Of a stretch of 64,000 nt of DNA, positions 18,501 to 24,500 are shown piece by piece; the first letter of the stretch is position 1; every line of letters begins with the position of its first letter. The notes beneath the pieces were generated by a model. It saw only the letters and a list, made by a program, of their open reading frames with translations, ran no database searches and had not been told where the DNA came from. The DNA is from Macrostomum lignano (Eukaryota), in NCBI GenBank assembly GCA_002269645.1, contig NIVC01002146.1, positions 62,001 through 126,000 of the forward strand. The letters run 5' to 3'. The position numbers and the translations under genes were made by a program.

Positions 18501-21500
18501 ATCCCGACGCCGTCGGCTCCTTCAACAGATGACACCAAGTGACTATGGACACCCTGATGCGAATTTCTCGAGTTTCACCGATCAAGCCTCGACAGTAGGC
18601 AAGCCTCAACTTCTGAAAACCCTCAGCTAGTCTCTCGAGCATTCCGTCATCACACCGACACCGTCGGCACCTTCAACAGGTGGCACCAGGGGAGTAAGGA
18701 CACCTGAGCGTGATTTTTCATCATGCTCTTAACATTTCTGAAGCTCTCAGATTTTTAAGCACGAACATTGCTATAGTTAAGCTTGAACTCATGTTGCTGT
18801 ATATTTATAATATTATTACACATACTTTTATACATACGAGCTACATACATATTTTATTCGAAAAGCTGTTTAGTTTATTCAACTATAATATTGAACCCAA
18901 TTTTTATGCAGAAAGGGTTATGCTTTTAAAAAATGAAAAAAACCGATTGAATTTACTGGCACGCAAATGAAACTAAGGATCAAGTAAAGGTAGCCACTAG
19001 TATTATAATAAATAAACGAAAATTAGCGCAAAAGCATGATAGCTACTACTGTACATTCGCAAGAAATCCTAGAACAATGACAAAGTTTTTCATTATCCTC
19101 AAATATCCTTCAATTTTCTGATGACATGCACAACAAATTCGTGGCCGGAAATCTTTCGTGCTCCTTCCGGCTGGAATAGAAATGAAAATAAGACAATATT
19201 TTTTTCGTAAGCACTTCGTGTACAGTACATCTATACTTACAGGCGGTGCATCAACAGCCCTGCCACCAGTGACTTTTCGAAGATAGGTGGTAACTTCAGC
19301 TGGCCATGTGTACCTGCCAGGTCCTATTGGTGATCGGCGCATGTATCTAGCCCAAATTCGGTAGGCCTCATATCGAGCTTCTTTTCTTTTGGTGTCCTTG
19401 TAGACGGAACAAAATGCAATAAACTTTTTTATGTCATTCGCTGTTGCGCCATTCCGCCGCAGAAAATCTTTAACATTCTCAATGTCGGAAGACATGTCAC
19501 GCAACTCTGCAGCGCTGAAGCTGTTTACTTTAGAAACCTATAATTCGCGGAACCTCGTTTGTGATATAAATGTACCAGTGTTGGATGGCAAGTGGTGTGT
19601 AAACAACCTTCCCACATATATAGCCTTAGGAACTGGGGCTAGACAGCGGGCAGAATATGGGGTAGGTAAAGGCTGTCTGTCGGGCAGCAGCCAATCACGG
19701 TCTGCCGCCAGCGAGGGGAAGGGTCTCTAGGGTCACAAGGGGGAAGGCAGAGCGCCAGCACGCAAGGGTGGGTCTATAAAGACTCTAAACCCCAAAACCC
19801 GGCCTCACTTACTGGCCCAAAACAGACAAGAGTGAAATTTTTCAAAGCTTTAGATATCAGACAAGCAGTTTTGCGCCAACTGCAATGGCGAGCTATAGCG
19901 GCAGATGCCCCAAAGGTTCTGACCCAACTGACGAATCAAGATCGACCAGTACCGATTCAAGTGGTTCGGAAGTAAGTGAAGCTGACGCTGACGAGTTTCT
20001 GTCCGATGAGGAGCCGCCCGAAGTATCGTTAGCGCCGTCAAAACTACAAGTAATTCATGAGATCAGGCCCCTACCAGATCATGAATTTAGCTATAGCACT
20101 CAACATCCGCACCCAAGGCGATGGCCAAGCGACTCTGTACTGCGTTTGGAACCGCAGATCAATCCAAACTTTTCTTTCGACTCGCCAACGGAATGCGTCC
20201 TATTTTTTTTGCCCAGAGATGCTGTTGAAGAAATTGTCAGAGCGACAAATGAGACTGGCCATCGCAGACTTGGCAGTGACTTCGAAGACTGTGATGTTGT
20301 TGAAATGGAAGGCTTCATTGGAGCACTACTTTATTTAGGAGCCCACAACATGCGTAACGCAAGTGTACAGCAAATTTGGTGTGTCGACCCCTGTCATCCG
20401 ATTCACGCTTTTTTGGTAACAGGCTTCTCGAGAAACAGATCTTCGCAATTATGGAGTTGTCTCTCGTTTGAATGTCGCGCGAGCCGGATTGCAAGGGCTG
20501 CCAGAGATCCGATCTACGGCATTCGAGCTCTGTATAGCACTTTTCAAGATCGCCTCGCAATGCCCGTCCTGCCTGGAGCCTACATTTGTGTCGATGAACA
20601 ACTCATTCGATACTATGGCAATGACTGCAGCTTTGCTGTCTTCATGAAGGACAAGCCAGCAAGAAACGGCCTGAAGTTTTTCATGGCAACGACTGCTCGA
20701 AATCCGATCGAAGAAAGCAGTGACACACTACATTATGTGTACAAGTCAGAATTGTACACCGCAGACAACAACCTGCTGATGAAAGCGGAGAGCGGTGGCG
20801 TCGGCAAATACTGGAGTGGCGAGCAAGTACTGCTTCGTCTATCCGACAACTTTGAAGGCTTTTGGGTAAACATTACCGCTGATCGTTTTTTTACTAGCCC
20901 AAGGGTGGCAGCAGCGCTCTACGATAAAAAAATAACACTTCTGGGAACCGTAAAGCGCGATCGCAAGGGGCTGCCACCTCAGTTTAAGGACAAAAAGAGA
21001 CCAAGTCAGCCAGAGTTCCTCTATGACGGGCCTCTTACAGTCGTGCGTGCTTCAAGCAAGCGGAGGACTGTAATTCTGTTATCCACTAATCACCATGACA
21101 GCCGACGTGTGCCTCCAAAGAACAAACCAGAGCTGACCCAGCACTACAACGCAACGAAGGCTGGCACCGACACGATCAACAGAATGGTTACCACTATGAA
21201 CTGCCATCGCATATCGCGTTGTCTTGAAAAGACCATTTTTACTGGACACATGCTCAATGTGGTGTGGATCAACGGACACACGGTTTACCGTCTTTCAGGT
21301 CACACGGGCCTAACTCGCAAAGAGTTTCTCCTTCAAGCTGCTTCCGGTTTGCTTCAATCACAGATTGAACGCCGTGCGAATGACCTAACCGGCATGTCAA
21401 GTCATCTACGTAGTCTTTTCAACACGGTGCTGAAAATCCAACCAAATTATCAGCTATCTGAATGCGCTACTGCCGATCGGCCAACAGGAGAGCGAGGGCG

Positions 21501-24500
21501 ATGCCGACTGTGCATGGCGGAAAGGAGCACAAGTGCGGAGAAGTACTCGCTGAACACGCGAAACAAAAAGTGTGCCAACTGCGCTAGTTTCGTGTGCAAG
21601 AGGCATCGAAACGATGTCTACTTGTGCGACACCTGCTACAACCAACAGTAAAAATCCAGCCGGAAGGAGCACGAAAGATTTCCGGCCACGAATTTGTTGT
21701 GCATGTCATCAGAAAATTGAAGGATATTTGAGGATAATGAAAAACTTTGTCATTGTTCTAGGATTTCTTGCGAATGTACAGTAGTAGCTATCATGCTTTT
21801 GCGCTAATTTTCGTTTATTTATTATAATACTAGTGGCTACCTTTACTTGATCCTTAGTTTCATTTGCGTGCCAGTAAATTCAATCGGTTTTTTTCATTTT
21901 TTAAAAGCATAACCCTTTCTGCATAAAAATTGGGTTCAATATTATAGTTGAATAAACTAAACAGCTTTTCGAATAAAATATGTATGTAGCTCGTATGTAT
22001 AAAAGTATGTGTAATAATATTATAAATATACAGCAACATGAGTTCAAGCTTAACTATAGCAATGTTCGTGCTTAAAAAAATCTGAGAGCTTCAGAAATGT
22101 TAAGAGCATGATGAAAAATCACGCTCAGGTGTCCTTACTCCCCTGGTGCCACCTGTTGAAGGTGCCGACGGTGTCGGTGTGATGACGGAATGCTCGAGAG
22201 ACTAGCTGAGGGTTTTCAGAAGTTGAGGCTTGCCAACTGTCGAGGCTTGATCGGCGAAACTAGAGAAATCAGCATCAGGTTGTCCATAGTCATCTGGTGT
22301 CATTTGTTGAAGGTGCCGACGTCATCGGGGTGATGACGGAATGCTCGAGAGACTAGCTGACAATGTCCGTCGGTTGAGGTTTGCCCATTATTGAAGCTTG
22401 ATAAGAAAGACCTGACATAGTTGCAAAAGGACGTCCATAGTCACCTGATGCCACCTGTTGAAGGTGCCGACGGTGTCGGGATGATGACGGAATGCTCAGG
22501 AGACTAGCTGAGGGTGTCCGGCAGTTGAGGCTTGCCTACTGTCGAGGCTTGATCGGTGAAACTCGAGAAATTCGCATCAGGGTGTCCATAGTCACTTGGT
22601 GTCATCTGTTGAAGGAGCCGACGGCGTCGGGATGATGACGGAATGCTTGAGAGACTAGCTGAGGATGTCCTGCAGTTGAGGCTTGCCTACTGTCGAGGCT
22701 TGATCGGTGAAACTTGAGAAATTTGCATCAAGGTGTTCATAGTCACCTGGTGCCACCTGTTGAAGGTCTAGAAGCTCCGTCTCGGTGAAGGCTAGTGACC
22801 AACGAAGTCAGAGCTGATGCAGACACATGTGGTCGACGTGCTGATGAAATTTGGAGACTTGGCAAGGCTGCAATGAGGCGCAGTGCTGATTGGCGCACAG
22901 GGGTGTACTGAATACACTAGCGCTTATGGGAAAAATCCGACCTTCTGGCAGAATCGTCGAATATCTCGACGGTCCGAAGGGCTGGCGACTTGATTCTTGT
23001 TTGAGAAGGTGCGCAACAAAATGTTAGCCCGTGTTCTTGAATTTTGTGTGTCTGCGTTGCTCCGTTCCGGCGCAGCAAAAAAAATTGTCAGGGGGGGGGG
23101 AAATTTTCCCCCCCCCTTGGTAGTTCGACGGGCGGAAAAATGGCTTGGTATTCCTACTGTTAACATTCTTTTAATTTAGCATAAAAAATTATTACACCTG
23201 CCCCAATTAGGCCGGATGTGCAACCGACAGCTCAGCCGCAGCTATTGCGCGGCGCATCTGAAGGCTGCGTACGGCTGTTCAGTCCAAGGACTGGGGGGGG
23301 GGGGGGTCGCCACACACACCCTCAATTACCCCAGCTAATGCTGGCACCCATTTTACAGCTGGGTGGACTGAAACAATGCAGAGTTAAGGGGTCTTGCTCA
23401 AGGACGCAAATTGTTCAAGTGGGATCGGGAATCGAATCCCCGACCTTTTAGTCGTGATTCCGACGCTCTGACCACTAGGCTACAACCCCCTTTAGCATGT
23501 TAGCATAAGCCTTTATATAATTTGTAGGCACAGCTTCATTTTCATATAGTTTTCTTTTGAATTCAAAAGCCCAAAATTGTCAATACTCACAAGTGAAATT
23601 TTTGTTGCTTCTACAGAGCGACACCAACAATAATGGCTTAGGAGTACCTGCATGCAACATTTTTGTTTAAAATATACTTGATTCAAATAGGAACAAAACA
23701 AAACGTTCAACTACATGTATTGCCACTTGCGACCATTTACAGCTTGGGGATTATGAAATCAAAAGAAAATAATATGAAAATGAAACTTAAACATGCTAAA
23801 TTACTTATTCGTAATCTTTACTGCCCCAGATCAAATTCAATTATTGATTTGTGGTGAAAAAAAATGATTTCTTCCCATCTCCGCAGTTTATTCTTTTCAG
23901 GAAATTGCGCCTCCAAAAAGACTACACGATCTTTGAGAGTAGCGTCCTGATATGCTGTTAGTGGTGGATACTAATAATAACACAATAATAGCACGAGAGT
24001 AATATTAAGGAAGGCTGCGGGCCCCCTGACGCAACGCCTTAGGCGACAACCAGCGCTGACCAGTGTCTTTTGGGTTGGCCCTCCCTCATATGACTGTGAA
24101 TCGCACAGCCCCCTCCCCAAATGAACCTCTATATTGTAATACTTCCGCCCGGAACTGAATAGACACAGCACAGCAACAGACCAATCCAGCAGTCGAAGCA
24201 CTCAGCTTGCATCAGCATGTGAAAAATCTGCCCAACCCGACAGACCAGCGCTTGCATGCACTATTTAATATAACAGGCCCTCCCAGCCGGCCCACTGCTT
24301 GCCTCCTCCCTCGGGACTGGTCTCAGGATAGAGAGCGTAGGAGCAGGGCTCGTTAGCCCCGATAACGGCAATAATCTTGAGAGCAAACGGTTTCTAGAAG
24401 CCAGAAAGGAAAAAGCTCTATAAAAGCAACTTTGCTTGAAAATGCTGCCAGTGTTTGATAGTTTAACTTAAATAAATATTTATAATTCTACTAAAATTCA

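Follow-up and report, generated by a model that had tools for sequence, protein, structure and literature searches.

Introduction

Maize MuDR, a two-gene DNA transposon of the Mutator superfamily, carries near-identical terminal inverted repeats (TIRs) that hold the promoters of its two convergent genes, and the ends of T. ni piggyBac are built with spacers of 3 bp and 31 bp. Surveys of piggyBac-like elements describe elements of a single open reading frame (ORF), with TIRs mostly of 4-30 bp, sub-TIRs of up to 400 bp and a longest TIR of 528 bp (PMC5381638; PMC10813416), and CSB-PGBD3 is a domesticated piggyBac that serves as an alternative 3' terminal exon (PMC5381638). In this article, I will discuss a TTAA-flanked, piggyBac-like element with two genes that occupies positions 18003-23159 of a 64,000-nucleotide stretch of DNA from Macrostomum lignano (NCBI GenBank assembly GCA_002269645.1, contig NIVC01002146.1, positions 62,001 to 126,000 of the forward strand; the whole stretch is called the window from here on). 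Judged by its sequence and by the alignment of its arms, this is an intact transposon with kilobase-long TIRs, and the feature under study is the inner edges of these arms: the left arm (18003-19175, minus strand, 1173 nt) begins at a splice acceptor of the small accessory gene, and the right arm (21655-23159, plus strand, 1505 nt) begins 3 nt past the stop codon of the transposase gene. The reading that I favour, with a probability of roughly 0.6, is that the inverted repeat spread inward by DNA-level copying from the accessory side to the transposase side, that the coincidence with the acceptor is specific to this lineage, and that the two messages likely share their polyadenylation.

The transposase places the element firmly among known systems. 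Its intronless coding sequence (19885-21651, plus strand, stop TAA at 21649-21651) encodes 588 amino acids (aa) that match Pfam DDE_Tnp_1_7 (PF13843) with E=1.1e-46 over profile positions 2-349 of 349 and T. ni piggyBac 6x67 with E=6e-38 (phmmer); the catalytic triad D268/D346/D447 (T. ni numbering) is aligned and conserved, and the Cys pattern CRLC...CANC...CKRH...CDTC aligns to the C-terminus of 6x67, as expected of the Cys-rich domain. The TIRs, with tips CAGTAG and CTACTG, stand within a TTAA target-site duplication, the tip CAGTAG... directly abutting the left copy (17999-18002) and ...CTACTG the right copy (23160-23163; both unstranded). DDE_Tnp_1_7 with its DDD triad, the C-terminal Cys-rich domain, the TTAA duplication and the intronless transposase ORF are all shared with T. 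ni piggyBac and piggyBac-like elements, and asymmetric ends (the tips here differ by 28 nt) are shared with T. ni piggyBac itself. A single ORF and short TIRs, which are typical of the superfamily without strictly defining it, are absent: unlike the surveyed elements, this one has arms of 1.17-1.5 kb with 151-bp tandem subrepeats and also a conserved second gene that contains an intron and has its last exon within an arm, and unlike canonical piggyBac its tips start with CAGTAG and not with CCC.

With MuDR the element shares, by analogy, the plan of two genes and near-identical TIRs that would give both genes the same regulatory sequence, here a putative one. The layout, however, is the mirror image, since the two genes diverge and it is their 3' ends that the arms would provide; the accessory proteins of the two elements bear no relation to each other, and instead of a Mutator-type transposase and a 9-bp target duplication this element has a piggyBac-type transposase and TTAA. 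A shared 3' end would be expected of every element in which long inverted repeats enclose genes that face outward. As in CSB-PGBD3, piggyBac-derived sequence is predicted here to contain a functional 3' splice site and a poly(A) signal in the manner of a terminal exon, but CSB-PGBD3 captures a host transcript with an acceptor placed upstream of its transposase ORF, whereas the true acceptor here is that of the second gene of the element itself, and the copy of it beside the transposase stands in a poor context.

Where the arms begin

The first-pass annotation of this DNA held that arm homology begins at TCCAG on both sides, that on the left this is the acceptor of the accessory gene's last coding exon, and that the arm is a duplicated terminal exon plus 3' untranslated region (UTR) in which both messages end. 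The positions it gave are exact. The left arm starts with TCCAG at 19175-19171 (minus strand) followed by CCGGAAGG, the right arm with TCCAG at 21655-21659 (plus strand) followed by the octamer CCGGAAGG again, and because the next base inward differs (T at 19176, read on the minus strand, vs A at 21654) the boundary of homology lies exactly at TCCAG. From there outward the inner arm pair (18752-19175 and 21655-22078, 424 nt) is 100% complementary in an inverted-repeat scan, and in the alignment of the arms the inner 566 aligned nt contain zero mismatches.

Read on the minus strand, the left arm consists of the last 5 nt of the accessory intron, exon 2, a 3' flank with the mirrors of two AATAAA motifs, the 151-bp subrepeats and the tip. 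Since the last exon of the accessory gene and its 3' flank sit within the left arm, the right arm carries an identical copy of exon 2: after the copy of TCCAG comes a perfect, non-coding mirror of the exon (21660-21731, plus strand), then AATAAA at 21951 and 21972, the subrepeats and the tip. The mirror begins 8 nt past the transposase stop, as first described, and the two AATAAA motifs are the only ones in the right arm (their left-arm mirrors, at 18874-18879 and 18853-18858, read TTTATT on the plus strand). The view of the arm as a terminal exon plus 3' UTR holds only in part, as the copy of the exon is indeed contained in it, but the arm is the whole TIR of 1.17-1.5 kb with its subrepeats and TTAA-flanked tips, and only the inner ~300 nt can be exon and UTR. 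For annotators, the mirror exon past the transposase stop should not be called coding.

The accessory gene

The accessory gene is divergent from the transposase gene and lies on the minus strand, with exon 1 at 19241-19495 (85 codons, ATG at 19495), a phase-0 intron of 70 nt at 19171-19240 (GTAAGT...TTCCAG) and exon 2 at 19099-19170 (23 codons plus stop, with coding positions 19170-19102 and the stop at 19101-19099), so that splicing would give a product of 108 aa. The donor, CCT/GTAAGT, ranks by score among the highest 3.8% of GT sites across the window, and the pyrimidine tract of the left acceptor is 82% pyrimidine. Exon 1 has homology in the closest relative (locus L002, described below), where the two exons have the same lengths as in the window, 255 and 72 nt, and where nonsynonymous differences (pN) lie far below the saturated synonymous ones (pS) in each, at pN 0.16 and pS 0.82 for exon 1 and pN 0.26 and pS 0.73 for exon 2; these substitution counts fit purifying selection on both exons. 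An AlphaFold model built from the family alignment is compact (predicted local distance difference test score, pLDDT, 89.8; predicted template modelling score, pTM, 0.82), and exon 2 folds into the predicted accessory domain, residues 91-100 reaching a pLDDT of 96.

An exhaustive HMMER/phmmer search with the spliced 108-aa query returned 21 homologues (best E=1.6e-36 and 7.3e-21), and a word-indexed homologue search with the accessory protein returned no matches. Many of the homologues, with lengths of 105-121 aa, match the query over residues 6-107/108 and hence through exon 2; the C-terminus of P0035, VTGEEFVKYVVKILKDI, which lines up with that of the window protein, is one example, and the closest homologue, P0034, is 68% identical to the window protein. 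Taken together, the homology through exon 2, the conserved position of the intron, the signs of selection and the confidently predicted fold support a genuine accessory gene with a genuine terminal-exon acceptor, as the first-pass annotation had proposed for the left boundary. Read without splicing, the same region gives an uninterrupted ORF of 152 aa (19046-19504, minus strand) and one of 95 aa in the relative, and the public gene call P0034, from L002, is this unspliced form; the unspliced ORF, 152 aa in the window and P0034 in the relative, is a trap for annotation.

Related elements

The closest relative is divided between two loci, L001 and L002, which overlap by 1049 nt at 100% identity and which, when joined, give a divergent two-gene layout as in the window. 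L001 carries a transposase, P0001, that is 71% identical to that of the window, and the accessory gene of L002 has its intron at the same codon boundary (after ...AVDAPP), in phase 0, of 90 nt, with the ends GTAAGC...TTACAG, followed by PDGARNVSGEEFVNYVIKRMKDI and the stop. The last 30 nt of L002 (2295-2324) equal L001 2692-2721 when each is read in its own gene's orientation, which makes them an inverted repeat, and L004 ends in the same 30 nt as L002; the L001 and L002 contigs both break exactly at the k-1 overlap, as is expected where an assembly graph enters a repeat. The arms of the relative thus start at L002:2295, equivalent to L001:2692, that is 301 nt past the accessory stop and 316 nt past the transposase stop. 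Measured against shuffled controls, the relative's two unique 3' flanks have no similarity to each other, there is no exon-2-like sequence after its transposase stop, and its arms have no similarity to those of the window. The window arms are near-identical and yet share nothing detectable with those of a relative whose transposase is 71% identical, which fits arms that are either of recent origin or under ongoing homogenisation.

More distant members repeat the picture, in that the subrepeat-rich arms of L015 start ~210 nt past the accessory stop and in the L008/L010 family a stretch of ~700 nt separates the accessory stop from a short TIR. No arm boundary at the accessory acceptor was found in these related elements, and from their sequences the boundary in the window looks like a lineage-specific outcome and not a conserved design. 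The idea of an acceptor-linked boundary as a conserved cassette falls with the closest relative, whose arms start 301 and 316 nt past the stops; inner boundaries unrelated to the acceptor are what the first-pass annotation had itself set against its proposal.

Message ends and the proposed isoform

The canonical poly(A) signals of the element are confined to the arms, and it is plausible that both messages are polyadenylated at the AATAAA motifs there, in which case they would share a 3' UTR of ~220-250 nt past the exon-2 sequence; it is likewise plausible that the transposase message would carry the exon copy as untranslated sequence. In the relative, AATAAA is absent from both unique 3' flanks and the first one is found inside the arm, at L001:2876, so the formation of 3' ends within arms may predate the capture of the exon. 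That one small RNA or RNA-binding protein might regulate the two genes jointly is pure conjecture.

A further proposal was that the transposase splices into the cassette to make a variant without its Cys-rich domain. The right copy of the acceptor keeps only 5 nt of the intron, and the 22 nt upstream are A-rich and 41% pyrimidine, where the left side has 82%; of the phase-0 donor-like sites right before the Cys-rich domain, the best-scoring one, ACG/GTGCTG at 21427, reaches -1.75, which is below background, and the sole strong donor-like site, GAA/GTAAGT at 19972, would leave 29 codons of the transposase. With so poor an acceptor and no suitable donor, such an isoform finds no support in the sequence and is unlikely. 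Stop-codon read-through into the exon copy was also considered and rejected, for the transposase and the copy do not share a frame, and read-through would therefore not yield the exon-2 peptide.

How the boundary may have arisen

In the history that I favour, a conversion or template-switch tract between the arms would have run past an older boundary and replaced the original 3' flank of the transposase gene by the accessory gene's terminal exon and 3' flank, to end 3 nt after the transposase stop, which would be about the furthest point that spares the transposase, as a longer tract would damage the Cys-rich domain. The copy beside the transposase would be the derived one, because exon 2 is ancestral, being present in both intronless and intron-containing relatives, and the template would have been DNA or unspliced sequence and not a processed message, because 5 nt of the intron are included (a chance match of 1 in 1024). 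Several points weigh against this account. The mechanism and direction of copying come from comparative logic, and the splicing, the poly(A) sites and the shared UTR are all predicted from sequence; only 30 nt of the relative's inverted repeat are seen directly, the remainder being deduced from the k-1 contig breaks; and the element is known from a single copy, that in the window, where a scan finds one copy, while exact-sequence look-ups elsewhere, which used the transposase, the unspliced accessory ORF and one arm ORF, found no second. Also, it is improbable that a breakpoint placed at random would fall both 5 nt from an acceptor and 3 nt from a stop, and some selection on the arrangement is possible.

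This last point is shared with the proposal of a selected cassette of terminal exon and 3' UTR, which would couple the two genes through a small RNA or RNA-binding protein and let the transposase splice in to give an isoform that lacks its Cys-rich domain. From the acceptor onward, after all, the two 3' regions are 100% identical, with the boundary at most 5 nt from the acceptor, the AATAAA signals are found only in the arms, and the first AATAAA that either gene of the relative meets is also inside the arm, so that a common distal 3' end may predate this element; but a cassette of this kind is quite unlikely given that the arms of the closest relative and of other family members start well downstream of the genes, that the right acceptor copy is without its pyrimidine tract, that there is no usable phase-0 donor before the Cys-rich domain (the strong one at 19972 leaving only 29 codons) and that the exon copy and the transposase stop are in different frames. 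It is, in my estimate, very unlikely that the arrangement is instead ancestral, with the ancestor's arms already reaching the acceptor and the transposase stop and the relative's inner segments escaping homogenisation and diverging beyond recognition. The similar lengths of the relative's unique flanks (301 and 316 nt) would suit such a history, and with neutral sites between the elements saturated (pS about 0.8) old homology could be invisible; the flanks nonetheless have no similarity above shuffled controls, and the arrangement is missing from the distant members, whose accessory genes have no intron and whose end repeats are short or far away. An assembly artefact, in which a collapsed or mis-joined inverted repeat produced both the inner identity and the boundary, is scarcely credible: it would account for the zero mismatches across the inner 566 aligned nt, and several differences between the arms do fall in homopolymer runs typical of sequencing error, but the arms also differ by a clean 302-nt change in repeat number, by 4 substitutions and by a 28-nt tip asymmetry with counterparts in L018 and in piggyBac end architecture, both genes are intact with TTAA at both ends, and independent assemblies of the relative have the same gene layout and an inverted-repeat signature. 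Inward spread of the repeat from the accessory side by copying of DNA accounts best for these observations. The exon within the repeat is a clear example of how homogenisation of inverted repeats can rewrite the 3' UTR of a transposon gene.

The arms as a whole are ~99.7% identical, with the 4 substitutions in all (optimal global alignment), and their indels are a 2-nt difference in an A-run, the lengths of G/C-runs, the 302-nt step and the 28 extra nt near the right tip. The step corresponds to two extra 151-bp subrepeats on the right (2 x 151), which has 4.3 copies at 22125-22767 against 2.2 copies at 18367-18704 on the left. The repeat-scan figures of 100% for the inner 424 nt vs 97% had prompted the idea that the inner part is younger than the outer arm, and this was rejected; in the global alignment all 4 substitutions lie in the outer half, which is not significant (p ~0.07).

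The accessory protein family

Among the family members, R41, Y45 and F97 are invariant and V98 nearly so, with F97 and V98 encoded by exon 2, and the window protein has the defining properties of the family, namely a length of ~100-120 aa and the motifs RY..Y(R)LWA(R/K), YLR..TGG and a C-terminal FV.YV(V/I)..L.D. Searches of Pfam, PDB sequences and, with Foldseek, PDB and BFVD found no match for the family, and closer queries of the JGI metagenomes found no relatives. Members are encoded beside DDE_Tnp_1_7 genes in the window, in L001/L002 and, on marine metagenome and other contigs, in L006/L007, L008-L011, L014, L015-L017 and L018; where the ends of the element are visible, the accessory gene sits inside it. 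The two genes of the L008/L010 family are enclosed by tips ending in ...GGCATCCCCCA directly before TTAA, and those of L018 by tips of TTAA followed by CCCTTCGTCGGTAACG-G20. The layout is divergent in the window, L001/L002, L008-L011 and L015-L017 and convergent in L006/L007, L014 and L018, and the accessory intron is confined to the window lineage and its closest relative. These neighbourhoods, as sequenced, show that the accessory family travels with piggyBac-type transposase genes, and no description of a comparable gene turned up in a limited search of the piggyBac literature, which is no proof of absence.

The coincidence at the arm boundary deserves less attention than the clade around it: piggyBac-like transposons, from a flatworm-type genome and from marine metagenome contigs, that share a conserved accessory protein with a fold without a known match and that have, in the sub-lineage of the window, kilobase-long arms rich in subrepeats. 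Since piggyBac is a widely used genome-engineering tool that the surveys describe with a single gene and short ends, a natural clade whose ends run to kilobases and in which a second protein is conserved would broaden the range of architectures known for the superfamily, and the accessory protein would be a possible handle for control if it is true that it modulates transposition. One could go further and imagine that this ~110-aa protein of undescribed fold is a cofactor or regulator of transposition, that the arm captured its terminal exon and 3' UTR, and that the two messages, sharing a 3' end, are dosed together, but as a whole this chain is speculative and unlikely.

The ends and surroundings of the element

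The intergenic stretch between the two divergent genes (19496-19884, unstranded, from a reading of the sequence) contains TATAAA at 19775-19780 (plus strand) and a TATATAT-like motif near 19617-19625 (minus strand), and is presumed to be a bidirectional promoter of both genes. At the tips, the 28 extra nt on the right (23126-23153) repeat a motif before the G-run (CTTGGTAGTTC / CTTGGTATTCC); the comparison covers 18003-18030 vs 23107-23159, and a similar insert of ~30 nt is present at one tip of L018, whose tip regions are at about 7541-7580 and 13060-13137. Runs of G and C stand beside the tips in the window, at 18022-18050 on the left (G12-AAATT-C9) and at 23084-23118, and in L018 at 7559-7600 (G20); they may be a signature of the subfamily, and they may also be prone to sequencing errors.

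The surroundings are very dense in repeats, and their GC content swings widely, between 28 and 67% per 2 kb. An 84-bp satellite of 12 copies with 99% matches (16991-18004) stops at the left TTAA of the element, which coincides with the TTAA that opens the 84-bp unit; the satellite does not continue in the right flank, where an inverted 56-nt piece of the unit (82%) is found at 23794-23849, ~640 nt further rightward, and the two may be an older repeat structure that hosts the insertion. Further tandem arrays surround the element at 24626-26009, 15757-16415, 14572-15074 and 26803-27000, and the types seen nearby include a 15-bp unit repeated 94 times, a 42-bp unit repeated 16 times, 27/136-bp arrays and 20/39-bp arrays. 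Directly to the right of the element, a segment at ~23390-23490 (minus strand) is tRNA-like by eye and possibly a tRNA-derived short interspersed nuclear element, and ARAGORN and Rfam scans of the window, this segment included, returned nothing.

Elsewhere in the window, the ORF at 781-1332 (plus strand) has a Pfam match to EF-hand, that at 3093-3701 (minus strand) a weak Pfam match to rhodopsin-type seven-transmembrane receptors, below the family cut-off, and that at 11151-12134 (minus strand) Extensin-like repeats, also below the cut-off and probably of low complexity; these three are possibly fragments of host genes. An alpha-tubulin gene without introns, of 454 aa, lies at 31144-32508 (plus strand) and points to a macrostomid flatworm as the probable host: among named proteins its product is 94%, 90% and 89% identical to those of Macrostomum lignano, while proteins from the other named organisms listed reach 79% identity at most.

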